A DNA stretch of 64,000 bases, taken from the NCBI GenBank assembly GCA_000708835.1, contig DF237311.1:28417-92416 (forward strand), in the 5' to 3' direction. Of this stretch, positions 5,119-49,762 are shown in pieces. Position numbers and translations under genes: made by a program. Under the pieces are notes generated by a model, which was not told the DNA's origin, did no database searches, and saw only the letters and a list, made by a program, of their open reading frames with translations. The stretch is from Klebsormidium nitens (taxonomy: Eukaryota > Plantae > Klebsormidiophyceae). Within the stretch, counting starts at the first letter, position 1. Each line of letters begins with the position of its first letter.

Positions 5119-5771
5119 GTAAGGTTTCTTTTTAGATGCAATAGGAAAAGCCTTGATTTTAAGCTTCTGTCTCAAGGCCAAGTAGTCGGTTGGTCGAGAC
5201 AAGGGATCCTAATACCGAAAAGGATCGAAAAGGTGATCGAAAAGGAAGAAGCGTTCAAAGATGGTTCGACTAGAGATCTCTTTCCTTAATCGACGAAGAT
5301 GAGTTACTAGCTGAGGGTCAGTGTTTTGGGTCATTTGCGTATACCAGAGAGTCTATGTATTCGGCGCCGTCCCCAAGATCTTCGAGACTGTAAGCTTGTG
5401 GGCAACAGGTAATACTTGAGCTTGAGTCGGAACATTCAGGGATCGGGCGACCCATTGAGCGAGCTCCGCTAGAATTCTGCCTTCATGCCTCTGGTCCAAG
5501 AAGGATTGCCAGCAACCACCTTTTCTTTCGAGTCTTAGGATTAAGTCGACCCAGGGCGGTTTTCTTCGGTCGGAGTCAAAATACCTGCGTCATATATGAG
5601 GAATTAGTTGCAAAGGCCCCTTGTTCGGTTTTGTTTGCAAACGCCTTGCCAGCTTAAACTGTTCCTTCTGTCCCGGGCCGCGCCGCATTCTTTCATCTCC
5701 TTCACCTTCTACCGGTCCGGTTTTGGGCCAAGCAATTGCTTGATGAAGCGATGCGTTTCTTCGCTGGTGTG

Positions 5772-6106
5772 CACAGGGAGGAACACCGGTTTGCCCGGTC
5801 TTCCTGCCCGGCCATCCCCGTCCCTTCTAGTTCTGCCCGGTGATCTGACCCCCTGCCCGGTCTACCGACTTCCCTGCCCGGTCACAACACCGGGCAGCCA
5901 ATCGACGGACGTCCTGCCCGGTCTCGCAAAATCACTGGGCAGGAAGAATGACCGGGCAACGATTCTCTACTACCGGGCAGCGCATCACAAGGCAGCAACA
6001 CGACCCGGGGCAGCCGACATCGCCGGGCAAGTGCGCCGGGCAGCATCTACAGCCGGGCAGCGCAGTCGGGGAAGAAAACCGGGCAGTGAGATACGACCGG
6101 GCAATT
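5772..6106. repeat. Left TIR plus subterminal array of the TGCCCGG / CCGGGCA motif
   Basis: About 15 copies, mostly forward in the outer half and reverse in the inner half. Arrays like this are typical of CACTA subterminal regions. Confidence 0.85.
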
Positions 6107-27603: not shown

Positions 27604-27938
27604 CCTGCCCGCTCATGTACGATGAGTTTGCCCGGTCTAATTGCCCAGCCACTTGCCCGCACATGTGAATGCGTTCCCCGGCGTTGCTGCCCTCCCTTGA
27701 GCGCAAGCTGCCCGGTTGTACTGCCCGCTCTTGAGCGCGAGCTGCCCGTTTGTGCTGCCCGGTTTTCGTTCGCGCTGCACGGAGATACGGGTAACCCCTG
27801 CCCGCTCGTGCTGCCCGGCCACGATCACCGGTCAAACGGCCCGCTGCCCGGATTTCGGCCGATGACCGGGCAGGAGGCCGGGGAACGCGCTGCCCGGTGA
27901 GCTGCCCGTTAACGGGCAAACCGGTGTTCCTCCCTGTG
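27604..27938. repeat. Right subterminal TGCCC(G)G array plus right TIR
   Basis: More than 12 copies of (C/T)TGCCCG(G), ending in CGGGCAAACCGGTGTTCCTCCCTGTG. Confidence 0.85.
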
Positions 27939-28541
27939 GTGGAGACCGCGTTGAGCTCTTGCTATAAACTGGTGCCTGTCAAGCTTTCCCTTGGGATAAA
28001 TGTCGAGGATCTTAATTACGCAATGGTGCTCGCAGCTATTCCAATGGTGGGGATACCCGCCCTTTGCTTTGCTTACGTCGCGCTCGATGACCTTCTCTTC
28101 AAAGCCCCGCTGCCCGACCCTGGCAGCCTCAACGCCTTTCTCCAATCAAGCGGCCAGAACGTAACGCTCAGCCTCTGTACCATCAGGGACGCGTTTCAGG
28201 TCTATCTCGGTTTCTCAGACAGCTGCGACCAGGTTTTGGAGTCTCGCTATCCAGAAGCTGGCGCCTCCTTCGTGGAAATAAGGAAATACACCAAAAGACA
28301 GGCTTACAGCCATGGCTGGGAGCTAAGTGTTATCCTTTGTTTTGCTGGCATAATCTCATGCTACTCCTGGGTGCTTGCTTTCGGAGGCCTGCTTTACTAC
28401 TTAGGGGGAACCGTACGCCTGCTTTGCTGTCAGCGACCTCAGGCCAAAGTGCACGATGTCGAGATGCAGGACGCTGCACTTTTAGATGATGACGACGGTA
28501 GTGACGGACTTGGTAGTGGGTCAGATCTGGAAGATTCTTGA
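27939..28541 (+). pseudogene. Family-B (LPDP membrane protein) copy B1, C-terminal half only, directly abutting the transposon right end
   Basis: Encodes TM-APLPDPGSLNAFLQSSGQNVTLSLCTIRDAFQVYLGFSDSC-TM-CCQRPQAKVHDVEMQDAA, closest to B4. The reading frame begins at the TSD GTG. Confidence 0.8.
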
Positions 28542-29948
28542 CGCGGGTGCTTACGAAACCTGAACGCGGAACTGGGTAAGGCCTCGTAAGGAAGCATGGT
28601 GGGTGAGAGCCAAAGTGACAGGTAAAAGAATAAACAAAGGTGCAAGCAAGGAGTTACAAGTGAAGAAAAAGAGCTCCCAAGCTACCGGTTTTCAAGAGCG
28701 TTGCATAGAAAGAAAACATGAGATGCAGCGATAATTTGGGCTCGAGCGAAAAGACTATCGTGAGGATACTTTCTACTGAGGTACATTCAATTTGATTCTG
28801 GATGCATCTAGTCAACACGTTTAATCTGTAATACACCAACTAGTTTTCGAAGGCTATCACGAGTTTTGGTTTTTCTGGGACCCTTTCGCTGCCATCCAAT
28901 CGTCACCTAGCTCATTTCGTACTAAAAGTATATTCGTATTATGGTGCTTCATTATTCTTGCCCGCTAAGCAAGAGGTGTAATCGAAGGTAGTAAACCATA
29001 CATAGGCTCCTAAAGTAACCTTATGCGCTATTGTCCCTGACGTTCTATGTCCTGTACATTTTCTGCACTCAATACTTCGAAGTCTAAGTAGCATGCTTGA
29101 TGTGGGCGTCTCCACTTTTAAACGATCCAATTGGTTCCAAAAGTCGTTGTTGCTGCAGAGGTAAAACATTCTTCGTTTCATGCTCATGCGGTCTGGTGCA
29201 AAATCTTCTCAATCATGGGCAGCTGTATTTTTGCGCGCAATGAGTTGGTCAATTCAGGACTGTTTATGCCATCCCTGCCGAGTCGCGGGAGTTCGAACTC
29301 AATACCACGATGTCCGTTCTCTTGCATTTTGACGTTAATCCAGAAATGAAACCGATTCCAGGATGTAACGAAACCGACGCAAGCATCTCAAAGGCAGAAC
29401 CCACATTCAACGGACACTAAGCTTTCGAATTCGAATGGAACTCTTTAACTCTCCCGGCTGGCGCTCGCCAATGGTTTCACGTAAGAACTTAAATTGTGTA
29501 TGCCATACAGTATGGGCTTCTTGAAGGGTAGAGTCACCGCTTTCTTCCTGGACTGCAGCCTTCGCTAAACATGGGAACGACGTTGACCTGTTAACGTGGA
29601 TCTATATCCAGATATGGGGCCGGACGCGCTCGCGCCGCGGCGCGCGGCAGGGTAAGCAAAAGCCGCGCACGCCGGCGCATCGGGGGTCGCGAAGGGCCAC
29701 CGGGCGGACGTATCCGAGCGGACGCATAACCGTGACGGTCGGACGTCTTTCTGCGCGGCCGCCACGCGCAGGCCGCCCTCTTCGTCCTTCCAAAGCCTTT
29801 TCAATCCTAAGCTGGGCCAAACCATTCAGCGAACGCGAACGCGAACGCGCGACACGCGAACTTCAGCATCTAACGCGCTGCTTACTTGCCATAGATCAAA
29901 GAAGCGGCTGGACGTACATCCTAAGACTTTAGCTGCGGTGAGGAAAGG

Positions 29949-30958
29949 ATGACGGCCTTCAAGGCTTCTGGCGTGTCACTTTGGGCTGCCAGCATTTTGG
30001 CCATTCTCTTGGCGTTTGTTCAACAAAGCGAGGCTGCAAACTTTACCGTGGAAGTGACACTTGTTCACATGAAGGTCAACGGCACCACCAGCTTGCCTGA
30101 CCCAGGTCCCCTAAACGACTTTCTCCGGCAAAACGAGAGTTTGTTCAACCAATTATTTCCAGACCCTCAGCCCCCCTTGCAGCTGCAGAAATGCAACGCA
30201 ACCATATACCAGATCAACGCGTTTGAATTTTACACGCTCCAGCATCCGAGGGGGTGCGAGAGCGCACCGGGGCTCGCTAAGGATCCTGCGCAAGAGAGAA
30301 TGGTGCGCAAGTATGACAAGATTGTGGGAATCTGGGCAGTGGCCGTGTTGGCTTTGGTGATCCTCCTAGGCTGCGTGTGGCTGGTTAGCCCAAAGTTCGC
30401 TGCAGGCGTTTGCCAGTGCCTCGGAAAGATGCTAGTGCCCCCCCGTTATGGTAACCCTCAGTATAATGAAATCTGGGTGCTCGGTTTCTGCTTCCTCTTC
30501 TTATGCACCACGCTGCTTGGCTGGTTTGCAAGCTTCATCACGGGCATAGTTGTGTACGGCGCATTCATTGGCGTCAAGCACTTAGACCCAGCGAAGCTAC
30601 CTGACCCAGCTAGCCTTAACCAATTCTTTTTAAACAGAAACCAAACCGCCACCCTCTACCAGTGCACAATCCGAGACATGTTCGAGGTTTACGTTGGGTT
30701 TGCTGACAGCTGCAATCAGTTGCAGAGCTGCATTTACCCGGGAGTGGCACGCAAGGATGGGCCACCCCCTTTCGCTCACGGAGGCGGAGTAACCTTCGTA
30801 ATGATGATGGCATCAGTAATCACTTACGCATCCTTTCGGGGACTCTCTACTGTTGCTGCTGTTGCTGGCCGATTACTAAGAGCACCAGGAAGGTCTTTCG
30901 CGAGCGCAAGCAGGTGCGGAGTGTCGAGTTGCGGGCTCCAGATGGGTCCGCAGTGTAG
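29949..30958 (+). pseudogene. Family-B copy B2, full-length but frameshifted near the C-terminus (~30835-30841)
   Basis: Signal peptide, two LPDP repeats and TMs. The family-typical tail TLYCCCCCWPITKSTRKVFRERKQVRSVELRAPDGSAV* lies in a different frame ending at 30958, while the annotated ORF runs on to 31004 in an unrelated frame. Confidence 0.75.
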
Positions 30959-33290
30959 GCCGGATAGATCAGGAAAAGCGCTCTCTTTCGTCCTCTTACG
31001 TTAATAGCGTAAGTTTCAAGAACGGCTTGCAGTTAAGGCGTTACGTATTCACGTCAGAAGTAGATTTGCTTCAGACCGGTCATGACCTCTCGGAAACGAG
31101 TCGTAAGAACAGAGTGCAATGAAGTGAGCTTTGGCAGCATACAGGCATGATTACTTAACTTGAGTCTTGATTATTGAGGCGAGAGATCAACGCTAGAAAA
31201 GCGAGGTGAGTCATGAAAACAGAAGCGCTTCTGTGCGCTTTCTTTTAAAAGCCGTACGCTAAGCATTACCATCAGATTGGGTACATCATGTATACTTCTA
31301 GGTTCGAGTCTGTAGGAAGAAGTAGCAGTCCGGTTTGCGTGGCGGTCTTTGGGCCCTTGTCAAGCGTGTACAACATAAATGCCTGGCGCGTTTGGAGTTG
31401 CTATCTGTTTATGTAAGCTTTGATCATTCAAATTCATGCAATCAAGCAAAGGGCTTTGACACACTCATCCCTACCCAATGGCGATCAAAGTGTTTCGCTT
31501 ATCGTATTATGAGGTGAGGGGCTCTTGGGCTATGAGCTACTACTCCTTGAGTCGTGAAAAAGCTATGACTGCTCATGTGGTTTTGATTGCGCCACGTCTC
31601 ACAACAGCTTCACGTTCCGGCTGTTTCCTGATAAGCACTCATGAATGTAATGGTATTGAGAAAGGCTCTGAATAGCTTCGAGAACAGGATGATGCTTAGA
31701 ACAAGTCCACATGCTTCGTAGGGTGGTTGTAGACTGGCGCCACCACCCAAATGCAAACCTGCTACTAAGGCTCTTTACTTGGACTCGATACTTCTCTACA
31801 TCAAACTAAAAAGCGTCAAAGTCAAAGTCATTCAAACACCAGGAAGATAACAGAATTGCATCTACAGGTTTCGCACACGCCGATCATCATGAACGCATCA
31901 TGCAGCAGAATCAGAAACGTGTATGCTTATAACGCTTGGGTAAGGTTTCACCACAGCTTTATCGAACCCTGATTCTCCAGAGCCTTTTACTTTGCAGAAA
32001 CTTGATCCGTATTAGCAGATCCCGCTGTTATTGCCGTTTGCCAAGAACGGGTCCGAAAGGCAACAGCTTAATCCATTTGTCAAACGAATTGCCGTTCAAT
32101 GTTTCTGCCGCACGCCAATACAGTGAGAGCAGTGGTCCTCCAGTTCAGACTCCATTAGAGCTTCGAAACCTCCTCAAAGCTTGCGTAAATCTGTGGAAGT
32201 TTGAGTGGTAGCTTAAATGGGTCGCCCAGCTGCGCTTGTCGGAACTTTCTCATGAATTGTTCTAGTGGCCGGTTGTACCAATAGTCTGAAGAGAGCGGGG
32301 GAGAGCCACGCCATCACGTACGTCCTGAAACGCTGATAAGATCTGGGGCTCGATTTCAAAGATCTGACAAGACGGGCTTTCACAAAAACGCCGGGTTCTC
32401 AATTTCAGTATGAGGTTCCGAAAGTCACAGCAACAAAATATATCTTCAGACGTTCTGCTGTTCTGCTGACTGAGAAGTGGCCTGCAAGGGAATAGAGGGT
32501 TCCAACGCGCGAATGGTAAGGATCCTTGCAGAATGCTCAAGCCCAGCGCGCGCGCGAGCTCGGCGTGCTCGTGGCGGCCAGCGCATCGGCCCTTGGATGC
32601 GCGGCCGCAGGTCGCGCAGGGTTTAGGAGCCTTCAAATCCACCCCGCCGCGTGCTAGCACAGAAAGATAGAAAGTGCGACCGCGACGCCACAGAACGCGG
32701 CCACTCTCTGCTCAGCGGGGAGGCGCAAGGGAAGGCGGTCTTACTAATCATTAGTAAGAGCAAACCGGCAAACAGCCTTGGCGGCCGCTCGAGCAGGGCC
32801 CCGGGGGGGTAAACGGCTGGAAACGGCCACCCCCAGGAAAGTGAAGGCGGTGCAAAGCATGTTAAACTTCCATACTGCGACCGGACAGCAGAGAAGCAGC
32901 CCGGACGGCGGTGACGTCAGCCAGGAAGCGATGGTGCGTCAGCTGGAGGAAACGGAGGTGAGCCGTTGATCGGAAGAGCGTTAAGCACGATACCATATTT
33001 TCCCGATTCACTGGAAACAAAAGTGTGGCGGGGTTTGCCAGATGCACGTTTTGTTATTCTTGTCCAAAACAGACGAAATGTATAACGCGGCCTCTCTCAG
33101 GGGCGGAAACCGTTCCTGAGCGCGAACTTGTGTCCGATCAACAACCTGATTTCAAACCTGAGATATCCATTTTTGCCAGGAATCTCCACACAATGGAGAT
33201 TGTCCTTCATCAGAAACCCCTCGGAAGCGCCATGTAGGTAGGATGTCCCCAAAACTTTGCTCGAGCGAAACCCACCGAAACACATCACAG

Positions 33291-33462
33291 GATTCGAAGC
33301 GCCCGGCAAAGGCCTCGCACAAGCCGCGGTACACGTGGCGGTCCCCTCGGAACACCCGCGAGTACGACGACTCGAACGCGGACAGGGCCTCCACGGCGGC
33401 GCACGGGCTGCTTCAGAGTGCGGCGGGAGGTCGGCGTGGGGCGCTTCTCCTCCGTCTACCAG
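33291..33462 (+). pseudogene. Frameshifted fragment of a protein kinase N-lobe (CK2-alpha-like)
   Basis: Exon bounded by cAG/GTGCGC. Deleting one G at 33405-33407 gives REYDDSNADRASTAAHGCFRVRREVGVGRFSSVYQ, which aligns without gaps to the CK2-alpha start as I recall it ([35 protein letters not shown]). No later kinase subdomains were found. Confidence 0.45.
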
Positions 33463-33464
33463 GT

Positions 33465-33486
33465 GCGCGCGCGCGCGCGCGCGCGC
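33465..33486. repeat. (GC)11 alternating purine-pyrimidine tract (Z-DNA-prone)
   Basis: Directly visible, immediately after a GT donor. Confidence 0.85.
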
Positions 33487-34098
33487 GGCTGCTGTGATGC
33501 CTCTCTCAGTTTCATCTCTGTATGTGGATATCCAAAGGACGCTTTGTACACTGTCTGCCTTTTCAAGGTTGTCCGCCTGTTATTGTCCCTTCTTTAGTTC
33601 TTTTTTGTTTCTACTTTCGAGAGGGCGATACTCGGACGCTTACCATGAGGTGCGCGCGCACGCGGCGCTGCGGCGTTGAGTTCGCCAGACCTTAACGCGC
33701 GAACCTACTCTGCAGACCTTTCAAAAAAGCTGAGCAGTCTCAGTCTGAGAGACGCACCGTAGAGACGACGTGATACCAGCTGTCGCCCTGAATGGGCTGG
33801 TGTTGCGCACTACACCTGTCCATTTTTAGTCATTACACTTGTCGACAGGCGGGCGCGCGCACCGCGGCCCCCACGCGGATATGCGACGGAAGCGCGGTCG
33901 CTCTCCACAGCTCATCCGAGCCGGAAGGACGCGCCGTAATGACTTGTTATAACCGGCCTTCAACCGGAGCGTCACAAACTTGAACCTCTAGCATTGCAGC
34001 AAGCTCGCGAAGCACCGAAGCTGGACAAAAGCGGGTAGCGCCTGAACGTCCAAATCACAGGTCGAAAGCGCCACAAAGAAGACTCGTCCTGGGCAGCC

Positions 34099-35137
34099 AT
34101 GGCGACTTTCAGACACGGCAGCTGCTCCTTCCCAATGAAGATCTGCCTTCTCCTCCTCGCTGGTGCGTTTGTTTCCACCGGGGAGGCCGCTGACATCACT
34201 GTGGAGGTGGCGCTTGTTCACATAGAGGTGAACGGAACGACCAGCCTGCCGGACCCAGGTCTCCTCAACGACTTTCTTCGAGAGGACGCGAGTTTGTTCA
34301 ACCCTCTCATTCCAGACCACCCCCCATTCCAGCTGCAAAGGTGCGGCTCGCGTCTGTTTGAGACTCCTTTCGACTTCTACACGATCCAGCATCCGGGGGG
34401 ATGCGCGCGCGCGCCGGGGCTGTTGAGAAACCGGGAGAGAGACAGGGCGCTGCATACTTTTGACATGGTCGTATGGATCTGGGCGGCGGTTGTTCTGGGG
34501 CTGATTATCCTTGCCTGCGTAGGCTGCTGCGTGAACAAACCGTTTGCAACGGTTGCGGGGAATTACTTCGGCCAGCCGACAATCCCTGACCGCGAGTCAT
34601 TATGCTCCCCTGGGCCTTCAGTGGGCAATTGCACGGCCTTTTCCCTGCTCGTCGGCGTGGCTTTTGGCGCAGCTTTGTATGCGATAATCAGTCACCAGTA
34701 CCTGAACATGGTAAAGCTCCCCGACCCGGCGCCGATCAACCACGTACGTCTTCGCTTCCCACGGTTACAACACCACCCTTTACCAGTGCTCGATCAAGGA
34801 GAGATTCCAGGTCTACATCGGCTTCGCAGAGAGCTGCGACCAAGTCCAGAACTACACCTACCCGGAAGTGAAACCGATGTCGGAGTTCAACCCACCCCTA
34901 GTTCACGGACCGGGTTTCACCACGCTCATGTGCTTCGCCTCCGGAGTTACTTTTTCTTCGTGGACCCTGCTGGTCCTACTAGCGCTCTCCTTCTGCTGCT
35001 GTGGAGGGGCCAATTGCTCATTTCCCGAGGACCCAGATGAAGGCCTGGATGACATAGCGAGGTTCCGAAAGCTGCAAGGACTCAATCCGGACGGGAGCCC
35101 TAAATTCGAGGTTTACAAAGGAAATCTGGGCGTGTAA
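34099..35137 (+). pseudogene. Family-B copy B3, frameshifted by a 4-bp duplication (ACGT ACGT, 34742-34749)
   Basis: Removing 4 bp restores LPDPAPINHVFASHGYNTTLYQCSIKERFQVYIGFAESC...FCCCGG...*, colinear with intact copies. Confidence 0.85.
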
Positions 35138-36383
35138 CCATGATGGTTCTGGGCTGGCTATGAGCTGGTTTCAAAGTGCTCAAGTGCCCAGTAGCCAGGC
35201 TTGGGCCGTAACCAGCCTTGGAACAAGGTTAGATCCCAGTTACTGTCCATTGATCTGAGACTCGAGTCTGGAAATTCAGCAATATGGTTAGCAGCCAGAA
35301 CTTCTTGTGTAAGGCGCGTTTCGGCAGCATCAAGAACTGTTCAAAAGCGCCCGTATAGTCACATTGAGTTCGTAGAAAGGGCGTGAAAAGCTTCAGATGA
35401 GAGCCGCCGAAGACTTTGTGCGGCATACTATCACCTTGGATCGTTCGTACCTAGTTACGTTGAGAAGTAGATAACTTTCTTAAAGAGCTAGGTTAGGGTA
35501 GATTATACGGGACAGCAATACCCCAAGGTTAGCGTCACTCGTCCTGCTTATTTTGTCGCTTTGGATCTTACCAAATAGGTTCAGAGTAGAACGCATTCTT
35601 CAAGTTAGTCAAGATTGCTCCCGTCAAGCGGTCGTGATCTTCAGACTGAAGTCCCCTGTCGCAACCCCCTGTCGCTTCCATCAGTAGCTATTTAGCGCCT
35701 TTCCAATCGTTCCGTGCGCATCTCAAGCTGAACATAACTGGGCCGTCCAATCAACTTTTCCTTTTCTGCTTCTGAACCATCTCAGACCATCTAGTAAGTG
35801 CAGTTCGTTTGCCATACTGAGTGTCGTTTGATATCAGGTGATGATCATAGCCCCCCTTAATGGAGTCAGGACTCTCAGGCTCTTCTTAGCGATTGCATTT
35901 CTGGCCCTTCACTGATCTATCATACCGTCTTCCGCACTGTCCAAGTAACGTGTGACATTGAAAATTCAATTGATGCTAGATCAGCATAATGATAAGGAAC
36001 GGTCCTGAGAATTTCTAGCCCACCAAACATGTATATATAGCGCCCAGCCTGACTACACCAACATATCGACCTGACTCACCATATGTGTGATCCTGATAAC
36101 TCCTATCAAGCAATGTAAGCACTGGCATGCGCCCAGCTATTTGATCGAGTCACTCAAAACTGTCGCCACTTTCACGACCGTCATATCATAGACTTTGAGT
36201 CTTTCATTGTGATGCATGCCATGCAGGACGGTAAAGCTATGCAAACAACTGCATGGACTTTAATCGTGTAATCGCATCACTACGATCGTGCGGCGCGTGA
36301 TCGAAGGCTTAATTGCGAGTGCGACAAAACGTCCACACAATGATGGTGTTCAAGGCCAAGTTGCAGTCTACTTGCGTCCTTTA

Positions 36384-36719
36384 TCATGCGTGGCATCCCG
36401 CCAGAATCCCATCATATGTGTGCGGGCACTTGCCGACGATCAGCGCCAGCAGCCACTCGAGGTCCTCTTTGACAGCCGCCACTTCCGCTTCCGTTCCCAG
36501 GGCGTCCGTTCCGCTCACGCTCGACACCGTCACCGCCCCGCGGAACCTGTCGACGCGCATCACGTGGGCGATCCGCGTGGGGTTTGCGGAGCTGGGCAGG
36601 GCGGTGTTCAGGGCCGGTTCGGAGCTGTTTATATATTAAGTAGACGGTTATGTCGTTTGTGAAGAAATCAGGCGGCAAACAAACAGCCCCTGCAAGGAGA
36701 CGGCGGTGAAGGGAACCAC
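36384..36719 (-). pseudogene. Family-A copy A3, degenerate (multiple frameshifts)
   Basis: Minus-strand frames give VVPFTAVSLQGLFVCRLIS / FTNDITV / ...RIAHVMRVDRFRGAVTVSSVSGTDALGTEAEVAAVKEDLEWLLALIVGKCPHTYDGILAGCHA*. The 3' flank resembles that of A4. Confidence 0.8.
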
Positions 36720-37719
36720 GACGGTTTACTTCACAGTCACCGATGGAGGATAGCGATGATTCATAAAGTTGGAAGAAGCTACTACAACAAGTGTGCAGGT
36801 TTTAGTACCGCCTCCTTACACCGCCAGAAAGGAACGCAAAATTTTGGGCTTACATCTTGCGCCAGAAAGCATACGACCAGGAAAACGGAAGGTCGAAAAG
36901 ATTCACGTGGTTTGATTGGAAGGAACTGGCAAACTCAGAGGATTTTTCCTTTTGGTTAAGGTCCTAAGAAAAGAAAGTTAGTGAATGTGGTTTCTCGTCC
37001 AGGAACGCAATCTGAAGTGTACGTGAAACCAGATTCAATCCCCGACTTTGTTTTGAGTGGGTGCTCGAGCACGCGGGGTGAGCCGAGACATCGAGTCTCG
37101 CCACTCGTTTTATCGTTTGCATGATGAGTAGAGCGATCTATTTCTTTATGTGAGTGATATATTCCTTTATCCGAGTGATCCGGTTTACGTGACCGTCGCA
37201 AAATTAGGAGCATGATGACCGCATAAACAACGATGAACACCTTCTACTGTTGGAAAGGAGACAATCGAAAGCCGCTGTGGGGCTGTCACAACCATTTTCT
37301 GGGCTGAAACGCGCGACAAAAATGTTGGAAAGCAGGTCCTGAGAGACAGGTCTCGACAACAGGAACCGTGCAAAAGTAGAATACAAAGCCCCAGATCTGC
37401 TTTTCCAGGTTCGGAAAAGCGATGCGCAAACGAGGAAAAAGCGGGGCCCGTCTCATTCCACAGCTCGCGGAGACTTGGCCGAAGAGCTGGCCGCTTCGAG
37501 CACCCGTGCTGACGTCAGCGCTCGCTTCACTTACTTGAGCAGGGGTCTACACGCTCGAATCCCCTGTTCTGCCTTTGCTGCTCCGGCAAATGCAACCGGG
37601 GCCCGACCATCTGATTCTCCCGGTCTTGGTCGCGCTGGTGCCGCCGCCCACTGCATCTTCCAGGCCAGGTGTCTGACCCTCCGACCCCCCAAAGTCCGCA
37701 TCGCTAGCCCCGCCAACTC

Positions 37720-38210
37720 AAATCGAGGCCGGCCGTTTGGACCCCCGGTCAGCTTGCCTCCCCCGCCCTGACGCCATTTGCCCTGCCGCGCACCCCCTCA
37801 AGCGGAAATGTGGCCGTTAAGACCTCAGTGTTCGTCTCTCTGGGCGCTCCCCCTCCTACTGCAGGGGGCTGCCCGGTTTGGCTCCCCGGTCGGCTGCCCC
37901 CTGCCGCGCTGACGCCGTTGCTTCGCAGCACCCCCCCAGGGGAGTTTCTGGCCGTTCGATCGAGTCCGCCTCCCTCGGCGCTCCCCCGGGCTGCCTTTTT
38001 GGGTCCCCGGTCGGCCTTCCCCCGACCCCGCCCCACGCTGCCGCTCACTGCTCGTCCCCGGTCAAGGGTCTGGCCGTTCGAGCCCCCGGTTCAGCTTCCT
38101 CCGGCCGCTTCCACGATGGCCCGCCCGGCCGGCCTGTCTCAGTCCTGCTCGCACCCCCGCTTGCCTCACCCCCCCAATCAAAAAATCTGGCAGTTCGATC
38201 CCCCGAGTCC
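37720..38210. repeat. C-rich degenerate tandem repeats (~120-bp period) built on TGGCCGTTCGA-CCCCCGG
   Basis: Motif at 37731, 37811, 37949, 38071 and 38188. The overlapping Pro-rich ORFs look like low-complexity artefacts. Confidence 0.5.
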
Positions 38211-40213
38211 ACTTTCTCCGGGGGCTCCAACTCCAACCGGGGGCTGGCTATCCCCCATGCCAGGCCGGCCTGTCCCCTGTCCCGCCCGCACTCCCGCTCA
38301 CCGCAAGGTCCCCAACGAGAAGTGGTTCACTTTTTCTCCCTGCTGTGCTCAGGGATCCGTCAGCCGAAACCCCCCGGTCCGAGGGTAGCACTCTTCCCGA
38401 TCGAACTGGTCATGGCTCGAGATCTGCGAGGCCTGTGTTCCGAAATGGAAGGTCAGACGTTATTGAATGCGGGGCGGCTTCTCGGAAGCATGGCAAGTAC
38501 GGCATGGTAAAGAAGAACCCGGCATTTTCGGCCGCCTCAAATATCCACCAAGCGTGCTCGTTCGGATTGCAAGTGGCAACGAAAAAGAGAGGCAGAAAAG
38601 CGACGATCGTCGAGGAGCGCAGAACAGCTCTGAAGAAAAAGGGAGCGGGACTCAAGAGAATCTGACCTTGCAGGAAGACAATGTGGGAAGGGAATTGTGC
38701 TTGCCCCTCAAGCAAATGTGGGCGGCCAATCGGGAACGAGGGGGCGGTTCTCAAAGCTCTCATTTCGGCTCGCTTTGCATCTGCAAAGAATGCAAGGACG
38801 AAAAGGGGTCAGGGGGCTCAGGCTAGCGCAAGCCCTGGTCCCGGGGGCAGTCCTCGCAGCACGCAAGGGTGCAAAGCGCTCTGCCATCTACTCGATAGGC
38901 TGCTTTGCAAGGTGACGTCAACGTCCTGCAAAAAGCCCTCATCTTTGAAATTTGGACCAACGCGCTGAGCAAAGCACGAAGGTGGGGGGGACAAGGAAAG
39001 CCCAGAATGTCCCTGAGGAGACAAAAGGTCTATGCCCCCGCCACTGCCTTTGCGGTAGTACGTGGGAAAAGAGTAGACTTCATTTGTATGCAGGAGCTTG
39101 AGCATTCCAGCAAAGGAACTTGCAGTCTGCAAAAAATGAGGTCATCAACATGGCAGTTAAGCGAATGTGGATTGAGTGACGTGCTCGAGACAACGCGCCC
39201 ATCTGATCCAGGACGCCACACTCGTATGTTTCTGGATACTGTTGCGCAGTACTGATCAAGAGGAGGTGTATCAACTGATGTAAGCACAAGTCGGTCTTAC
39301 ACCTGGTAACCGTGATTGATCATAGAGCGCAGCTTCTGATACCCCCCACCTGTCTAGCCTCACCTTAATAAAGATTGAAGCATCCCTTGCTTGCAAGGTT
39401 CTGAAGGTTGACATGAAAAGACCATCACCGTAGAAACCCACCTGCACTACAATTGTGCGCTTCTGCCAAGCTCATGACTTTAGATTCCTCCAAGCTTTGG
39501 AAAAAAGCTTGGAGGACAAAGGCTGATCGCGATTGAATTACGTGGCGCAGCTACTGCAACATGTTCAAAGTCATCACATGTAAATTGTGTAGGACCTGCA
39601 AGCAGACCTCACAGACCTGCGCAGACCAGGCTCGTCTTTTGATATCTCTGGACATTGAACAGCGAAGCCTGGCCGGGATGCGGAGAAGTTGTCCAGGCGC
39701 TACTAGTGGTGCTGATGTGCTGATCAACTCCGAAGGCCCAATGGCAAGGGTGATCCCCCGGCGACGATTCCCAAGTCTTTTTTAAGATTAGATTTTAGGG
39801 TTTTTTTTTACCCTAACCTGAAGTTTTAATCTTCGAGTTTGGGAGTCTTCGAAAACGACACCATCCGACTGCAGGTAGAGCCAGGTATTCGAACCCGTGC
39901 ATTTTCCTGTTCCTTTCCCGTCTTGCAACGGCGACTCGTGGCACGGAGTGGTTCTCCGGGCGAGAGATTTTATGGTATTGTGTCAAGCTTAGGGACTTCA
40001 TAACCTGTACAGGCTGTCACCACAGTTTGAATCTACCTATTAAACGCAAAAGTTGCTGTGCATGGACCGCATCTGACAGGTGTCAGGATGATCCCTGTAG
40101 ATGTTGTCATTATCATTAAAATGAGAGGGCTCCCGGCTTGGGCTCAGCTTCCTTCATTTTTGCAGAGGGCCAGGGCCCAGGGGGCAGGGGCAAGAAAGCG
40201 CCGCTTAGACGCG

Positions 40214-41227
40214 ATGGGGGCCCGCAGTCTCTTGGGCGCCTGGCATGTGTCAGCCTTCTCAATTGTCCTAATTGCTGCGGCGCTGTTTGTCCAGGGAGGG
40301 GAGTCGCTGACGGTTGAGACCACCTACCGCGTTCACGTGAATGGCAGCACCAGCTTGCCGGATCCAAGTCCTCTTAACGCCTTTCTGCTGAGTCACAGCA
40401 CATCGCTTAACCCGCTGCTGCCTGACCACCCTCCAGTCCAGCTGCAGCTCTGCAACTCCAGGGTTTATTCCCAACCCTTTGATTTCTACACGCTGCAGCA
40501 CCCGGGGGGTTGTGCCAGCGCACCAGGGTGGATAACGAGCAAGTCAGTAGGTGCGAGGGTGCTTGAAGCAATCTGGCTGGCATGGGGTGCGGTCCTTGTA
40601 GCTGGGCTGGTTCTCACTTGGGTGATTCCCTCCAGGATGTCTGCTCTTAAGGGATGGGCAGTCCGCTGTTGCTATAGCTTGGTGCCCGCCAGTCCGGAGC
40701 GCATAAAGATTCCAGCAGACATCATTGCGGCCTCTCCATGCCTGAGGGTAACCGCGGTGTTTCCATTGTTTATCCTGATAGCCCTTCTCAACTTTTCATA
40801 CGCTGCGATGGACAAACTCCTCCCAGCCCCGCTGCCCGATCCTGCCAGCCTGAACGCCTTTCTCCATTCCAGCGGCCAAAACATAACGCTCAGCCTCTGC
40901 ACCATCAGGAGAGACTTTCAAGTCTACATAGGGTTCTCAGACAGCTGCAACCAGCTGTCAGCCTCCCTCTATCCAGATCTTAGCACCACATGCGACGAAA
41001 CAACAATCGACACCAGAGTCCAAGACACTTTTAGTCATGGCTTGGCAGTGGCCATTTTGACGTTCTTTGCCGGCTTTTTCACATGCCTCTCCTGGCTGGT
41101 TATCGCCATAGGGGCACTTGCATACTTTGCAGCGGTCGTATACTTTTGTTGCTGTGGCCGACGTCCGGGCAAAGTGCACGATGTCGAGATGCAGGACGCC
41201 GCCAGCACATCAGGTCTGGTCGTCTGA
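40214..41227 (+). CDS. Family-B copy B4, intact 337-aa intronless membrane glycoprotein (signal peptide, LPDP ectodomain 1, TM, loop, TM, LPDP ectodomain 2, hydrophobic segment, Cys cluster)
   Basis: Uninterrupted ORF from MGARSLLG. It contains VNGSTSLPDPSPLNAFL...LQLC...FDFYTLQHPGGC and PLPDPASLNAFL...NITLSLC...FQVYIGFSDSC and ends FCCCGRRPGKVHDVEMQD. Confidence 0.88.
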   Translation: MGARSLLGAWHVSAFSIVLIAAALFVQGGESLTVETTYRVHVNGSTSLPDPSPLNAFLLSHSTSLNPLLPDHPPVQLQLCNSRVYSQPFDFYTLQHPGGCASAPGWITSKSVGARVLEAIWLAWGAVLVAGLVLTWVIPSRMSALKGWAVRCCYSLVPASPERIKIPADIIAASPCLRVTAVFPLFILIALLNFSYAAMDKLLPAPLPDPASLNAFLHSSGQNITLSLCTIRRDFQVYIGFSDSCNQLSASLYPDLSTTCDETTIDTRVQDTFSHGLAVAILTFFAGFFTCLSWLVIAIGALAYFAAVVYFCCCGRRPGKVHDVEMQDAASTSGLVV

Positions 41228-42271
41228 TGAAGAGACACTTGTGCGGGAAGTCTTGAGGAGGAGTATGCATGTGCTTTTTAGGCCTTCTTGAGGTGGAACC
41301 ATAAGGCTTGTATAAAGACAGCACGATAGTTCACTAGCAAAGGCTAAGAGCCACAATTTGAATGACATAGGCTTGTATTTATAAATAAGTCCCAGGGTTG
41401 TTGTCAAACTTTCAAAGCACAGAGTAATCATAACTGGTGTAAAGTACTGAGGTACGTACACGGACAGAACGTCGGACATGTTTGGAGAAAGTTCAGGGCT
41501 GTACGTTTTGCAGACACACTGACAAGTACGAGTCTGAGCAAGGGCCGGAATGCTTTTTCTTCTTCTACTAACTTTTGATCCACCTAGTATGTACAAAATT
41601 TTCGTAAACTCTGTTCGTCATACTGAGTCAGTGTCGTTTACCATTTCGTACTATCTAGCTAGAGCCCCTGGTGGGATCCGGACTCCCTTTTCGATGATCA
41701 TTTGCAGTTCTGGCCCTCTGTACTGATCCATCTGTCACAGCCGCCCGTCTTTCGCAACATGAGAACGTGTGAAACAATAAAACTAACTCTGATAGATTGC
41801 ACTATGATGATCGAGGTCCCGAGCTGAGCACTTAGTCCATAGAACTTTCTCACCAAGCATGTGCATGTCTAGTGCCCAGCCTGAGCTGATTAGTAAATAC
41901 TCAACGTACGCGGTAATCACCGACCTACTCAGTACCTGTGCTCTTGATGATTCATGGCAGGCACATGCGGCACGGGCGAGCAGGTTGATCAAATCAAATT
42001 GAGAGTGTCGCCATATGCACAAGTTAAGTACGATCATGTATAGACGTTGAGCCGCACCGTTCATTTACATGTATGCTGCACAATAATCAATTTAACTCTG
42101 CAAAGTCCTGCATGGACGGATATGATCTCGTGACTCGTTCATTGCTGCGAGCACGCGGCGCATGACTGAATGCTCGAATGCAAGTGCGACAAAACTTGAA
42201 ACCACACACTAATGATGGCCGCGCTACTCTCAGGTGTTCAAGGCCTCGTGGCGGTCTAGCTCCATCTCTTA

Positions 42272-43738
42272 TCATGCGTGGCATCCCGCCAGAATCCCAT
42301 CATATGTGTGCGGGCACCGGCCGCAGATCAGCGCGAGCAGCCATTCAAGGTCCTCTTTGACCGCCGCCACTTCCGGTTGCGTTCCCAAAGCGTCCGTTCC
42401 GCTCGAGCTCCACACCGTTGCGGCCCCGCGGAACTCGCCGATGCGCACCACGTGTCCAGTCCCCACGTGAGCAATCTCCGTATACCAGAGCGAGATTGTG
42501 GGGTTTGGGGGGGTGATGAACCTGGGCAAATCGGCCAGGGTTCGGTTTGGGGCAAGTTTGAATCCGACGGTCATGTCGTGTGTGAAGACGGAGATCAGAC
42601 GGTAGAGAAACAGCCCCGACGAGATGGCCGCGCACAAGGGGACCATCTCGCCTCCGACGTTCTCAGGGCACGCCTGAGGAAAAGGAGACAGATTGAGTCT
42701 GTAAGTGATTCAACAGGAGCTAGGCATAATGATCGGAGGACTGGAAAGTCGACAAAGTCGATTTTCAGCTGAAGCATCCGCTCGTTGGCTTCCATTATCC
42801 ACACGGAAGCGAAAGACTGCTTCACTTGGTATGCGGAAGTGACGGAGAGCGAGTGGCCGCATGATCCATAGGGTTCGTTCTTCGATAATGTGCTGAAACT
42901 CAGACCGCGTTTAGGATATCTTCTTAGAGAGCAAGAAGCACTTCCAAAGCCCTTCAACAGAAACCGTTGGCTGCCGGCGTGCTCAAAAGCGAAGAAGAGG
43001 AAGAACGCTATCATCACAAAATCATTACGAAGGTACTAATGCAGATGGTTGCAACATTACCTGATTGGTTGATACACGCTCGGAGAAGTCCTGAAGCTTC
43101 TCCTCAAGTTCGCAAATGCAGACTCTTCTGGACGGAGGATCAACGGTGACCGTGAAGCTCTCCTGATGAGTCCGTTCCGATCTGCAGAAGACAATCAGGT
43201 GGATGCATTCTAGCTTCGAGATGCTTCCGAGCTTACTTTACACTCCGAATCCTGCTTCGCCTTTCCGCGGGCAAGCTGGCTCGCCCGCCTTTGATATACT
43301 TTGATACACAGCTATTGTCTTCTGCCGCTCAGGCTCGGGCATCGCTAGGCTTAGACTTGCGCTTGGTGACGTGGCTCCACTAAACAAACTGAAGCAGGAG
43401 CGTCACATACACCTGGAAAAGCCGGAAGTGTCATAGGCAAGAAGGACGCTTCATCGGGTATGGCTTGCTTCGGAGAGAATTGAAAGCATACCAAAATCAT
43501 TTGTTCCAGCTTTGGCGAACGAGTAGAACAGCAAACAGGCGCCAGTTGGCCCTTACGTGTCAGGTTCTGGCACCGTCGTCCAGCGCTCGCGCACCCGGAC
43601 TATGTTGTCGCAGTCTTCTTGCGAAGCACCCTGGGGCCCTGCGTAAACCGGGTCCACCACATACCGCTCAAACTGCACGTGCAGTTTGAGCGGTATGAGT
43701 CTGCTGAGGACCTGGTGCACCAGGTCCTCAGCAGACAT
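42272..43738 (-). CDS. Family-A copy A4; exons 43738(or upstream)-43557 and 42698-42272 (202 aa from M43738), N-terminus F-box-like
   Basis: Phase-2 splice EPD ac|GTAAG...ttacAG|a ctc gives an open 609-nt CDS. EDLVHQVLSRL resembles the start of an F-box motif. The last exon is near-identical to A1. Confidence 0.7.
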
Positions 43739-44166
43739 CCTGGACCAACGGCCGACTAGACAGGCGAGAACGAGCCCAACCAGAATGACGGTAGCCCATG
43801 CTAGCCAGATTGATTCAAGCGTCTTAGCAGCTGCTGGTTTGCTCCTTATCAGCCCCGGCGCGCTGGCACAACCCCCAGGGTGCTGCAGCGTGTAGAAGTC
43901 AAAGGATTGGGAGTAAATGCTAGAGTCGCAAAGCTGCAGCTGGACTGGAGGGTGGTTAGGTAGCAGCGGGCCGGGTTAACCGAACCACTCTGCTTACGCA
44001 GGAAGGCGTTCAGGAGACTTGGATCCGGCAAGGTGGTGCTGCCATTGACGTGAACAGTGACCTCAAGCGTTAGCGACTCCCCTTCCTGAACAAACACCGC
44101 AGCGATAAAGACAAGCTTGAAAAGGGCTGACAACTTCCAGGAGCCTAAGAGACTGCGGGGCGCCAT
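43710..44166 (-). pseudogene. Family-B copy B5, N-terminal half only (signal peptide, ectodomain 1, TM1), with a 5-bp insertion at 43968-43975, fused to the A4 exon
   Basis: MAPRSLLGSW...VNGSTTLPDPSLLNAFL, then after the frameshift LLPNHPPVQLQLC...LQHPGGCASAPG...IWLAWATVILVGLVLACLVGRWSRMSA. Homology to B4 stops abruptly after ccaggatgtctgct. Confidence 0.82.
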
Positions 44167-46285: not shown

Positions 46286-47287
46286 CTACACCGCTGATCC
46301 AGCAGGGGCCTGCATCTCGATGCTATACACCTTCTGCCGGAGGAAACAGCAGCGGTACAGGAGTCCAGCAGAATGACAAACCAGCCCTGCGATGATACAG
46401 GCCCAGGAGGTGAAACTCATCCAAGCAGCCGCAAACAGCAGAGCGCTCATCCCAGAGCTATGCCTGAAGGCGTGGTCATTGTCCTTGGTTAAGCTGATCC
46501 CAGGGTAGAGAAAGTCCCCAACTTGGTTGCAGCTATCGGAGAACCCTATGTAGACCTGAAACGCGCCTCTGACGGTGCAAAGGTGAAGCGTTAAGTTCTG
46601 ACCACTGGAGAGGAGGAAGGGGTTCAGGGTTGCTGGATCAGGGAGTGCTGCGGAGTTGAGGGGGATTTGTCCAAGGCCAATTGGAGGTGGGGCCAGGTAC
46701 CAGATGGGGGTTAGGTATGCAATCTCCACAATCAATACCGTAACAGTCACGGTATAATTCACAAGGAGATTCTTTGGGGCACGCCCGCCAAAGTAAGCTT
46801 CAAGTTGCTTCGGGAATCCGAAGAATATATTGGCTGCCCACCATCCCCAAGGGGACTTGAAGCAGGTAGTACCTATGAGCGAAACTAGGTACAGCGCAAA
46901 AGCTAAGGGAGCCCAGATCAGCAAGACTATCTCCAATCTCTGGACAGCTTTGCCTGTCTTCTTAACCAGCTCCGGTGCCTTCTTACAACCTCCGGGGTGC
47001 TGCAGCGTGTAATATTGGAATGAGTTGGCAATTGTGCTGGCGTTACAGAGCTGAAGCTGGACTGGGGGCCTGTGTGGGAGAAGGGGATTGGTCATACTGC
47101 TGTTGCTTTGCAGAAAGGCGTTTACCATGGAAGGATCGGGCAGGCTGGTGCTGCCGTTGACCTGAAGGGTGACCTCAAGCTTCATCGCCTCCCCTTTCCC
47201 AATGGATGCAACAGCAACAAGTAGGCAGATCATGACTGCCATCTCAAAGCACGCGGATCTGAAGAGCTTGCAGAAGATTGGTTCCAT
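46286..47287 (-). CDS. Family-B copy B6, intact 333-aa membrane glycoprotein
   Basis: Full ORF with signal peptide, both LPDP repeats, conserved Cys pairs, N-glycosylation sequons and the tail RCCFLRQKVYSIEMQAPAGSAV*. Confidence 0.88.
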   Translation of the reverse strand: MEPIFCKLFRSACFEMAVMICLLVAVASIGKGEAMKLEVTLQVNGSTSLPDPSMVNAFLQSNSSMTNPLLPHRPPVQLQLCNASTIANSFQYYTLQHPGGCKKAPELVKKTGKAVQRLEIVLLIWAPLAFALYLVSLIGTTCFKSPWGWWAANIFFGFPKQLEAYFGGRAPKNLLVNYTVTVTVLIVEIAYLTPIWYLAPPPIGLGQIPLNSAALPDPATLNPFLLSSGQNLTLHLCTVRGAFQVYIGFSDSCNQVGDFLYPGISLTKDNDHAFRHSSGMSALLFAAAWMSFTSWACIIAGLVCHSAGLLYRCCFLRQKVYSIEMQAPAGSAV

Positions 47288-48789
47288 TGCGTCACTCTAA
47301 GTCTTTGGGGTCCTACAACAACTACGTCCAGGAGAGGAGCGCCTAGCAGATTATGTCCGCAACTTATCAGGGGCGCCTTTGGCCGGCCTAACACTGCAGA
47401 GTACAGAAAGCTGGGCGGCTCGAGGTGTCAAAGACGCGGCCGCCGGGCGGGATTCAACCGTTCAAAGGTTTAAGAGCGCCGCTCGGCCGGGCCGCGCCGG
47501 CTGGCCGGTTCAATGAATCTGACCCGCGGCCGCGGTGCTTCCGGCCTACTATGTCTTTCCGGCCGCCGGAAACCGGACCGGAATAGACTTGCTTATCCAA
47601 ATGTGCACCAGACAGGAAGCCTTAGCTGTCAGACACGTCAATTCGCATCTTCAAGTTCTCATGATCAACAAACTGCGGCTGATCAAAAGTTTGAAGAACA
47701 TGTACCGTTTGGCACACCGTTAATTGGCGTCTAGGTGAGCTTTCATTCAACTGATTAGGCTCGAACGCTGAGGCGATGTATCACGTCCGTGACGTCGGCT
47801 GTCTTCTTAGGTCTGCTGTAGAAATATAAGTGCCGTTGTCTGAAGCACGCTGTTGGTGACCTCAGAGGCGCGGCAGCAGATGAAAGAGAAGATAGGTAGT
47901 ACCATCGAAGCGGTCTGCGTGTCTCCATATACATGAAGCTGCAGGACAAAGAGGCGTCCGGAAAAACTCATTATGCAGAGGTTTCGATACTCTCAAACGC
48001 TGGTATAAGACATCAATTCTCGTGATACTGCATGAATTTACTACCCATGGATTTGAAGTTCAATATTCTCATGCTCATCATCCTCTCGGATCATCCGGCT
48101 TCGTGCGGATGATGTCTTTGACCATTGGTCTTGCTTGCATGAAGACAGCTCTGCATATCTGACTTGAAAACGGCCTATCGGCCAGGTACATGCAGTAGAT
48201 GTGTAAAAGTATTTCGAGATCATATGGCCGGCCCTGGAAAGACAACGCTGGGAAAGAAGGCGCCTATATAGTTAACGGGCGATGATATCCAGGTCGACAA
48301 AGAGCGTTCTGTAACAGAGCGCTCAGAGCGCTCTTAGTGCATACAGTTAGTGGTCGACTTCCCTCCAAAGAAACCTGGATCAAAAGCGTTCACCATCTCC
48401 GACACGATAACTTTCAACTGTTTAACGGATGATCACTTCTTCAAGTTCCTGAACGTATAGTCATCACTTGAGACCAAGAATCCAATCAATTTCGAATCGT
48501 CTATCTTAGAAGCTCGATCACGACGTCTGAGGGTGCCCTCCTTTTCGGCATCCTATGAAGTGCTCGTTTCCCATGTCAGCACCGAACAGCGAAAAGCACT
48601 GAACCAATTTTCCTTTTGCAAAACGGGGCACCTCCGGCCGCTGCCTACATAACTTTCACGTCTAAAAGGCGGAAGGTTTACGTCCTCAAGAGAACCGCCA
48701 GGTCAGAAACTACTTCGTTTGCGGCCGACGTTACGTCTTCCCCTCTCTCAAACTAGTGTTGAATAGCTTCGAATCGTTGATTCTTGACG

Positions 48790-49762
48790 TCAGACACCCG
48801 TCCCTGAAGGAGCAGGCATTTCGATCCTAACAGCTTTTCTCCGCTCAAGGCAGCAGTTCCAAATTCCGACACAGTGACAGAACAACCCAAAGATGACGTA
48901 AAGCCAGAACAAGCACGTGATGACACCACACACGCACAGCAGAGCGACCATACCCCCAGTATGGCGGTAGACTCTCTTCTTGTCGATGGTCAGGCTAACC
49001 CCGGGGTACAGGTAGTCTTCAATTTGGCCGCAGCTGCCTGAGAAGCCTATGTAGACCTGAAACGCGCTCCTAACCATGCACCTACACAGCGTTACGTTGT
49101 GGCCGCTGGAGTGGAGAAACTGGGTCAGGCTTGCTGGGTCAGGCAACGGGGCGGCGTGAAGAGTCGTCAGACCAAGATACGCCAGGTAGAGAGCCGCCAC
49201 GCCGAATCCGGATAAAACCGCCACGAGGACGCCTGCCGGGATGCAGTCGCGCCGGATCCACTTGGGAAGACTTCCTCCAAACTCCATGCGCAGTTCTTTT
49301 GGAAAGCACCGCAGGGCGTTGCCAGCGCACTCCCTGAAGGATGCACTGAAGTGACGGGCGATAAAGCAGAGTTTAAAGATTGCCAGAGTCAGGGCAACCC
49401 AAAGCAGCCAGATTGCTTCAAGAGTGCGGATTGCTGTATCTGGGTTCCTTAACAAGCCCGGCGCGCTCTCGCATCCCCCCGGATGCTGAAGCGTGCAGAA
49501 GCTGAAGGGATTGGAGTAGATGCTCGCGTTACAGATCTGCAGCTGCACTGGGGGCCTGCGTGGGAGAAGCGGATTGAACAAACCAGTGTGGTTGTTCTTT
49601 AGAAATGAGTTTAGCAGACTTGGGTCAGGGAGACTGGTGCTGCCATTGACATGGAGGTAGACTTCAAGCGTGTAACGACTCCCCTCTTTGAACAAACACG
49701 AAGACAAAGATGACTAGGCCAAGCAAATAGCCTGCAGACCTTGAGAGCTTGAGGACAGCCAT
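48790..49762 (-). pseudogene. Family-B copy B7, +1 frameshift just after the signal peptide (~49672)
   Basis: ATG 49762 reads MAVLKLSRSAGYLLGLVIFVFVFVQRGESL then shifts. tta C acg ctt gaa should read LTLEV as in B5. The remaining ~295 codons are open and colinear. Confidence 0.8.

Follow-up and report, generated by a model that had tools for sequence, protein, structure and literature searches.

Near the end of Klebsormidium nitens scaffold DF237311.1, the 5' half of a gene from one family, here called B, runs in frame into the 3' half of a gene from an unrelated family, A. The question raised by this locus is whether the join encodes a working fusion protein and how the two halves came together. 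The initial annotation had interpreted it as a receptor-like chimera with an F-box-like cytoplasmic segment, assembled by deletion between neighboring B and A genes. Our analysis of the window, which is the final 64 kb of the scaffold and contains no N gaps, upholds the in-frame join of a B 5' half to an A 3' half but points to an origin by inversion and finds no F-box. We consider the locus to be, in all likelihood, the recent scar of a transposon-mediated inversion, representing one of two reciprocal breakpoints in the K. nitens B/A cluster; judged from the sequence, we put the probability of this reading at roughly 0.78.

The locus joins half of a B gene to half of an A gene

B is a Klebsormidium-restricted double-LPDP membrane family, one member of which is expressed full-length in Klebsormidium subtile (P0003). 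The parts of the B gene at this locus (B5) and of the A gene (A4) are as follows, in window coordinates.

44166-43718, minus strand: B5 as a whole, the first module and membrane helix of a double-LPDP B gene
44166-43972, minus strand: B5 up to the frameshift, comprising the start codon, a signal-like hydrophobic segment, and the first part of LPDP module 1
43967-43975, minus strand: tract with five extra bases, a near-tandem CCCGG duplication (columns 204-208 of the alignment to B4)
43966-43718, minus strand: B5 beyond the frameshift; in the original B frame it encodes the remainder of module 1, the membrane helix, and SRMSAEDLV
43672-43557, minus strand: exon 5 of the ancestral A gene (FERYVVDP... 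to ...PEPD), into which the B5 frame now continues
43181-43061, minus strand: next exon of A4 (SERTHQESFTV...STNQ), with GTAAGG/GTAATG donors and CAG acceptors intact
42673-42272, minus strand: last exon of A4, which encodes the CPHTYDG domain at the C terminus and ends in the stop codon (42272)

Several structural claims of the initial annotation hold. B5 aligns with B4 (84%) from the ATG at 44166, and the homology ends just past the SRMSA codons; beyond these, the B frame proceeds without a stop through EDLVHQVLSRLIPLKLHVQFERYVVDP... up to the GTAAGG donor at 43556 (GT at 43556-43555). The signal-like hydrophobic N terminus and the single membrane helix are both present, and the B5 piece ahead of the frameshift shares 75% identity with P0003, the protein of a K. 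subtile transcript. The extra bases that shift the frame are also real, although the insertion can be placed anywhere within the tract 43967-43975. Owing to this frameshift, the open reading frame that begins at the B5 start codon ends at 43849 after 105 aa, so there is no uninterrupted reading frame for the type I receptor that had been proposed. The piece after the frameshift has 0 stops in 83 codons and closes with a GTG at 43720-43718. We regard the 5-base insertion as an ordinary slippage-type lesion in a broken gene; nothing in it suggests reversibility, as a switch between membrane and soluble products would entail. A full-length B protein has two LPDP modules, and membrane helices follow both of them, whereas B5 has one module and one helix, its module 2 lying 16 kb off in B1.

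The exons of A4 (43738-43557, 43181-43061, and 42673-42272) follow a pattern common to A1 (P0037, KFL_003620040) and the database protein of the locus itself (P0036), and the end of the B5-A4 exon matches window positions 1-24, upstream of the next exon of A1, as had been noted initially. With this splice pattern, the frame-corrected fusion is 375 aa (1,128 nt) rather than the 343 aa (1,032 nt) first calculated, and the form starting at M43738 is 234 aa rather than 202 aa. The A part is likewise incomplete. Full-length A proteins (P0037, 521 aa; P0015, 452 aa; P0038, 497 aa) have ~300 extra N-terminal residues, which include an earlier, diverged copy of the C-terminal domain. A4 begins at A1 residue 309 (covering 309-521) and is a gene half without its own first exon.

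The C-terminal domain of the A family, located at the very C terminus, has the pattern ...LLYRL...W...H...G...FG...G...CPHxYDG...AG. Assemblies of metagenomes and of sequencing runs (Logan) contain many short, unnamed proteins with this domain, and no Pfam model for it was found, including in a scan of eight A-family proteins. Its fold is predicted with medium confidence as helix/three-strand/helix (pLDDT 74). Foldseek returned no match to the predicted domain at E<=0.001, and the best VIA-align Z score of 5.8 reflected a generic helix/sheet/helix arrangement, as in KA1 and AMPK C-terminal domains; the structural matches to this predicted model are uninformative as to fold. The A-family proteins P0015, P0017, P0037, and P0038 have two diverged copies of one domain, of which CPHTYDG marks the C-terminal copy; the first copy follows the pattern ...YRM.CLFP...YK.LW...HK.TG...EHK...LLSD.C.HPCGV.AGS.DP.

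Two perfect palindromes form the junction

Two long palindromes, a single base apart, lie where B sequence meets A sequence.

43699-43736: palindrome 1, perfect, 19+19; native B arm 43736-43718, inverted copy 43717-43699
43698: single filler base between the palindromes
43660-43697: palindrome 2, perfect, 19+19; native A arm 43678-43660, inverted copy 43697-43679

These 38-bp palindromes, which first appeared as an opposite-strand tblastn self-hit, have no spacer between their arms. The next longest non-simple perfect palindrome in the 64-kb window has 11-base arms, and the longest arms in 20 random sequences generated by a Markov chain that preserves base transitions were 10. The outer arm of palindrome 1 is native B sequence, as the B gene on a related Klebsormidium metagenome contig (L002) has the same codons with few substitutions. 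The outer arm of palindrome 2 consists of the last six bases of A intron 4 (..gtgcag) and the start of exon 5 (TTTGAGCGGTAT..), and the same intron/exon site is found in the paralogues KFL_000150140 (..ctgcag|TTTGAT) and KFL_000150150 (..gtgcag|TTTAAG). One palindrome is centered directly after the GTG at 43720-43718 on the B side, and the other is centered directly before the GTG at 43678-43676 on the A side.

Sequencing-adaptor palindromes were ruled out as a source, given the homology of the outer arms to B and A genes, and insertion of a MITE was ruled out because neither palindrome is an inverted copy of the other. Folded as RNA, the 97-nt stretch at the junction reaches -74.7 kcal/mol (z = -11). 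In the predicted fold, GGTCCA (43741-43746) upstream of the twin palindromes pairs with TGGACC (43650-43655) downstream and would close a three-way structure; this pairing may be due to chance.

The palindromes account for the supposed F-box. The F-box-like peptide comprises four native B residues, thirteen residues from the inverted-copy arms and filler, and two from the intron, and the inverted-copy arms encode residues 6-20. No Pfam family matched the 61-aa exon at E<=0.1 or the 308-aa P0036 at E<=1, and the segment is absent from the full-length A proteins P0037, P0015, and P0038. Whereas an F-box domain (Pfam PF00646 and relatives) would be recognized by its profile, the junction segment shares only a superficial leucine-rich pattern, ..DLVHQVLSRL.., with it. 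From its composition, the F-box-like peptide is a translated repair scar, and the F-box is an artefact.

The possibility that the junction is an assembly or cloning chimera at ~43700 is barely credible. The region does contain repeated gene families and a 22-kb repeat, which count in its favor, but the junction itself is in unique sequence within a window that has no gaps, and the template of each inverted copy is the flank beside it. The 3-base duplications that match at the reciprocal junctions, described below, are likewise not something that an assembler would invent.

The missing halves flank a CACTA-like transposon

Both missing gene halves are present in the window, on either side of a single transposon.

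5772-27938: CACTA-like transposon, 22,167 bp, with perfect 26-bp terminal inverted repeats and GTG flanking both sides
3159-5771, plus strand: A2, A exons 1-4 and the 5' part of intron 4; abuts the transposon; the missing 5' half of A4
27939-28541, plus strand: B1, covering the linker, a membrane helix, LPDP module 2, and the tail; begins at the transposon end; the missing 3' half of B5

An inverted-repeat search placed the terminal repeats, which start CACAGGG, at 5772-5797 and 27913-27938. The GTG triplets at 5769-5771 and 27939-27941 form a direct 3-bp target duplication around the element, as in the CACTA (CMC) superfamily. Termini in that superfamily are CACTA/CACTG; those of this element begin with CACAG. 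The element carries a transposase-like open reading frame of 794 aa (14397-16781), whose match to DUF4218 is weak (E=0.038) and below the cut-off.

The halves fit together closely. A2 comprises exons 1-4 (3159-5118) and corresponds to A1 residues 15 to ~308; its last exon is phase 0 with a GTAAGG donor, and 653 intron bases separate the end of exon 4 (5118) from the element. A2 and A4 together tile A1 without overlap or gap, and their phase-0 exon ends fit. The same holds for B: when aligned jointly with B4, P0002, and P0003, the two B5 pieces and B1 cover the full protein, neither overlapping nor leaving a gap. B5 and B1 fall in the same B subclade; counting against the inversion reading, B1 (~50% amino acid identity to relatives) is more diverged than B5 (~72%). 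Both pairs, A2 with A4 and B5 with B1, are collinear and nonoverlapping, as expected of the reciprocal halves left by inversion between a pair of transposons.

Since A2 and B1 lie at the element flanks and GTG lies at the palindrome centers, the same triplet is found at all four ends. The scar retains both copies of the target duplication, at 43720-43718 and at 43678-43676 on the minus strand, and the inverted copies, which have no spacer (0 bases between arms), are centered at what would have been the boundary between element and flank. Retaining one GTG per gene restores the B frame (..EDLV-ETALSSCYKLVP.., compared with ..ALKGWAVRCCYSLVP.. in B4) and the A intron/exon boundary (..ggtgtgcag|TTTGAG).

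These observations contradict the origin by deletion that the initial annotation had favored: a simple deletion is rejected on account of the presence of both missing halves in the window at the ends of the transposon. A related explanation, that neighboring B and A genes were joined by a simple deletion and repaired by polymerase-theta snap-back synthesis copying each end back on itself, we consider very improbable. Repair junctions are known to carry templated inverted insertions (PMC4912351, PMC5728401), and short natural self-complementary cores in both palindrome centers could prime a fold-back. Such synthesis, however, normally leaves an unpaired loop, yet these palindromes have no spacer; moreover, nothing is missing, as the reciprocal halves sit at the transposon ends with GTG at all four.

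A model of inversion followed by excision

The arrangement of the four halves is consistent with inversion of the following segment.

27939-43678: segment proposed to be inverted, 15,740 bp; holds B1, B2, B3, the A3 fragment, B4, and A4

When this inversion is undone, the B genes (B4, B3, B2, B1/5, B6, and B7) all share a strand, and the A genes (A1, A2/4, and the A3 fragment) share the opposite one. The inversion reading can be laid out as a sequence of events. Two copies of the 22-kb CACTA-like cut-and-paste transposon would have been present in inverted orientation, one inserted in intron 4 of the A gene, 3 bases ahead of its 3' splice site, and the other in the cytoplasmic linker of the B gene, and a GTG would have been duplicated at each insertion. 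The DNA between the copies (~15.7 kb) would then have been inverted, either because they recombined or through an equivalent alternative transposition in which their ends took part, giving A5'-GTG-[transposon]-GTG-B3' and B5'-GTG-[transposon]-GTG-A3'. The second copy, between B5' and A3', would subsequently have excised. In this excision, each flank may have been sealed by a hairpin at its boundary with the transposon; opening of the hairpins 19 bases from their tips, fill-in, and joining of the ends with one extra base would have produced two perfect 38-bp palindromes. The B part would have acquired its 5-base frameshift later.

With the 39 bases that the scar adds, the B frame runs on into A exon 5. 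For breakpoints placed at random, an in-frame, stop-free join is expected by chance in ~16% of cases, and the B5-A4 open reading frame is best read as an accident of repair.

The order of inversion and excision is deduced from one K. nitens allele, and the placement of A2 and B1 on two sides of a single copy relies on assembly through a 22-kb repeat, which is without gaps. The occurrence of GTG at both target sites requires either a target preference or a 1-in-64 coincidence. By analogy with P nucleotides, spacer-free inverted copies centered on the cleavage boundary would fit off-center opening of hairpin-capped flanks. We know of no biochemical demonstration of hairpin excision for CACTA elements and of no hairpin chemistry shown for a CACTA-type transposase, and equal-sided inverted copies of 19 bases are much longer than any of the few-base footprints familiar to us. 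Nicking by a nuclease at a measured distance from the hairpin tip is one possible cause of the 19-base length.

Public annotation of the cluster

In the public annotation, the join of B5 to A4 is modeled as the single gene KFL_003620110, which is placed at exactly 42272-44166 on the minus strand and encodes 308 aa (database protein P0036). Arithmetic on the P0036 sequence indicates that this model includes an additional intron.

43945-43740, minus strand: "intron" of KFL_003620110, 206 nt

This putative intron removes the frameshifted remainder of B5 together with the membrane helix. Its donor is GTCCAG, in contrast to the GTAAG or GTAAT of the four A-family introns that were checked. The same hexamer, GTCCAG, stands at both the start and the end of the interval (43945/43740), and the intron borders are therefore ambiguous. 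Overall, the 206-nt intron looks like a computational repair of the reading frame.

Neighboring models show comparable problems. KFL_003620120 (P0009, 231 aa; window positions 46286-49707) splices B7 to B6, merging separate B genes, and a public 769-aa model (window positions 29949-38510) extends from B2 to past B3. KFL_003620105 corresponds to B4 with 100% identity. Annotation of the B/A gene cluster is unreliable. Because of the GTCCAG donor and the merging of B genes in neighboring models, we regard the KFL_003620110 model as computational, and it is probably a patched pseudo-fusion.

The cluster also contains A3 (36387-36713, minus strand), a decayed fragment of an A-family last exon; given its internal stops and deletions, it is a plain pseudogene. 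A3 lies tail-to-tail with B3, as A4 does with B4. Rfam and tRNA scans detected no RNA genes in the 64-kb window.

Relatives of the junction

An uninterrupted fusion in other species was not seen among the database relatives found. The searches used exons and gene pieces separately, together with the database protein of the locus. No B-A fusion protein occurred among 22 relatives of the A domain (from 1.84 billion representatives), and the only B-A fusion among 4 word-search hits was P0036, the computed model of the B5/A4 locus itself. A metagenome scan for relatives of the junction returned one locus, which was distant. The related contigs L001 and L002 carry B genes only, with no fusion or junction; on L001, the B4 orthologue is present and both A4 and B5 are absent within 10 kb. 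A third contig of 642 nt (L003) holds an A last exon only.

The B gene of L002 (9518-10570) has an in-frame stop just past SRMSAMDRA. This stop falls in the same linker that the transposon entered in the K. nitens B1/5 gene.

Age of the scar and evidence for function

The 76 bases of the two palindromes contain 0 mismatches, which limits divergence since their formation to at most ~0.04 substitutions per site. All gene pieces except B5 are still open. Since the palindromes are without mismatch, the terminal repeats are perfect, and A2, B1, and the exons of A4 are open, we take the event to be recent.

Compared with L003, its closest outside sequence, the last exon of A4 has a dN/dS of 0.14. 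Its own branch carries 9 synonymous and 7 nonsynonymous changes (P=0.009 against neutrality), and there are 7 replacements on the A4 branch versus 3 on the L003 branch. By this substitution pattern, the A4 last exon shows purifying selection. The dS of the A4 branch (~0.095) nevertheless exceeds the age of the scar (at most ~0.04), and the selection signal therefore largely predates the fusion. On the B5 branch, a codon-based comparison in which the five extra bases were dropped from B5 gave 31 nonsynonymous versus 20 synonymous changes, a ratio not distinguishable from that of other fast-evolving B branches.

These data bear on whether the locus is a functional new gene, in which the B5 promoter would drive a membrane-anchored or secreted B-A fusion or the 234-aa protein from M43738, with the 5-base lesion toggling between products. 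The in-frame join, the intact exons and splice sites of A4, the constraint on its last exon, the existence of short single-domain relatives of the A domain, and the fact that annotators called a gene here all speak for this explanation. We nonetheless judge it unlikely. The B part is frameshifted, and any transcript from the B5 promoter would place a 105-codon upstream open reading frame ahead of M43738, while the 5-base near-duplication is not a known phase-variable tract. Furthermore, the constraint is largely older than the scar, a stop-free join in frame is not a rare outcome by chance, the annotated intron has a poor donor in a neighborhood of merged models, and the product has neither an F-box nor a counterpart among the 22 relatives. 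A working receptor or switch is thus disfavored by the frameshift, by how young the scar is, and by the lack of a B-A fusion among the relatives found, and the inversion scar is the preferred reading. Production of a truncated A protein at the locus is conceivable.

A more ambitious proposal is that of a newborn gene, producing either a 234-aa A protein or a 308-aa signal-peptide fusion. We consider it unlikely on present sequence evidence. If it were true, inversion and excision would have supplied a promoter-less A 3' half with the promoter and start of B5, and the peptide encoded by the scar would be a new linker. As a separate point, the twin 19-base scars would show a CACTA-like family excising via flank hairpins opened at a fixed distance.

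Comparison with known transposon rearrangements

The proposed mechanism is of a known kind, with Ac/Ds precedents in rice and maize. In rice, two inverted Ds elements recombined and one was then excised, leaving a footprint (PMC3239180). As in the Ac/Ds inversions of the OsRLG5 lines, such as D5, the K. nitens locus would involve two inverted elements and inversion of the segment between them, after which an element would remain at the first breakpoint and the second would bear an excision footprint (PMC3239180). The K. nitens case differs in being natural and in a charophyte alga, and its element is a 22-kb CACTA-like transposon with a 3-bp duplication rather than a hAT element with an 8-bp duplication. 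Its breakpoints also lie inside two unrelated genes, giving two reciprocal chimeras, and its footprint is far longer.

Chimeric genes have been described in maize, where alternative transposition of reversed Ac ends generates them (PMC1592236). There too, transposon ends bring together coding segments from a pair of linked genes, creating a new open reading frame; however, the maize genes are paralogues whose fusion has been shown to be expressed, whereas the K. nitens genes belong to unrelated families, the 5' part is frameshifted, and the product is putative.

The scar itself most resembles P-nucleotide joints. Hairpins at flanking DNA are documented in hAT, Transib, RAG, and MULE excision, and P nucleotides at V(D)J coding joints and in hAT, Transib, and MULE footprints are likewise spacer-free copies of the flank at the cleavage boundary (PMC5499845). 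Such joints and the K. nitens scar are alike in having an inverted copy at each end with little filler between, although the K. nitens copies are 19 bases per side, not a few. The twin 19-base scars are unusual both for their length and for being equally long.

Implications

If the inversion reading is correct, this locus documents with unusual clarity how, in nature, a transposon pair can halve two unrelated genes, swap the halves, and leave an open reading frame by chance; the four ends, the two target duplications, and the scar of the repair all survive intact. It also serves as a warning that the public gene model KFL_003620110 is probably a pseudo-fusion patched together in annotation. 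The equal, spacer-free 19-base inverted copies would provide sequence evidence for hairpin intermediates in CACTA-like excision, and long perfect palindromes bordered by a repeated triplet offer a pattern with which to search for further excision sites in the K. nitens genome.
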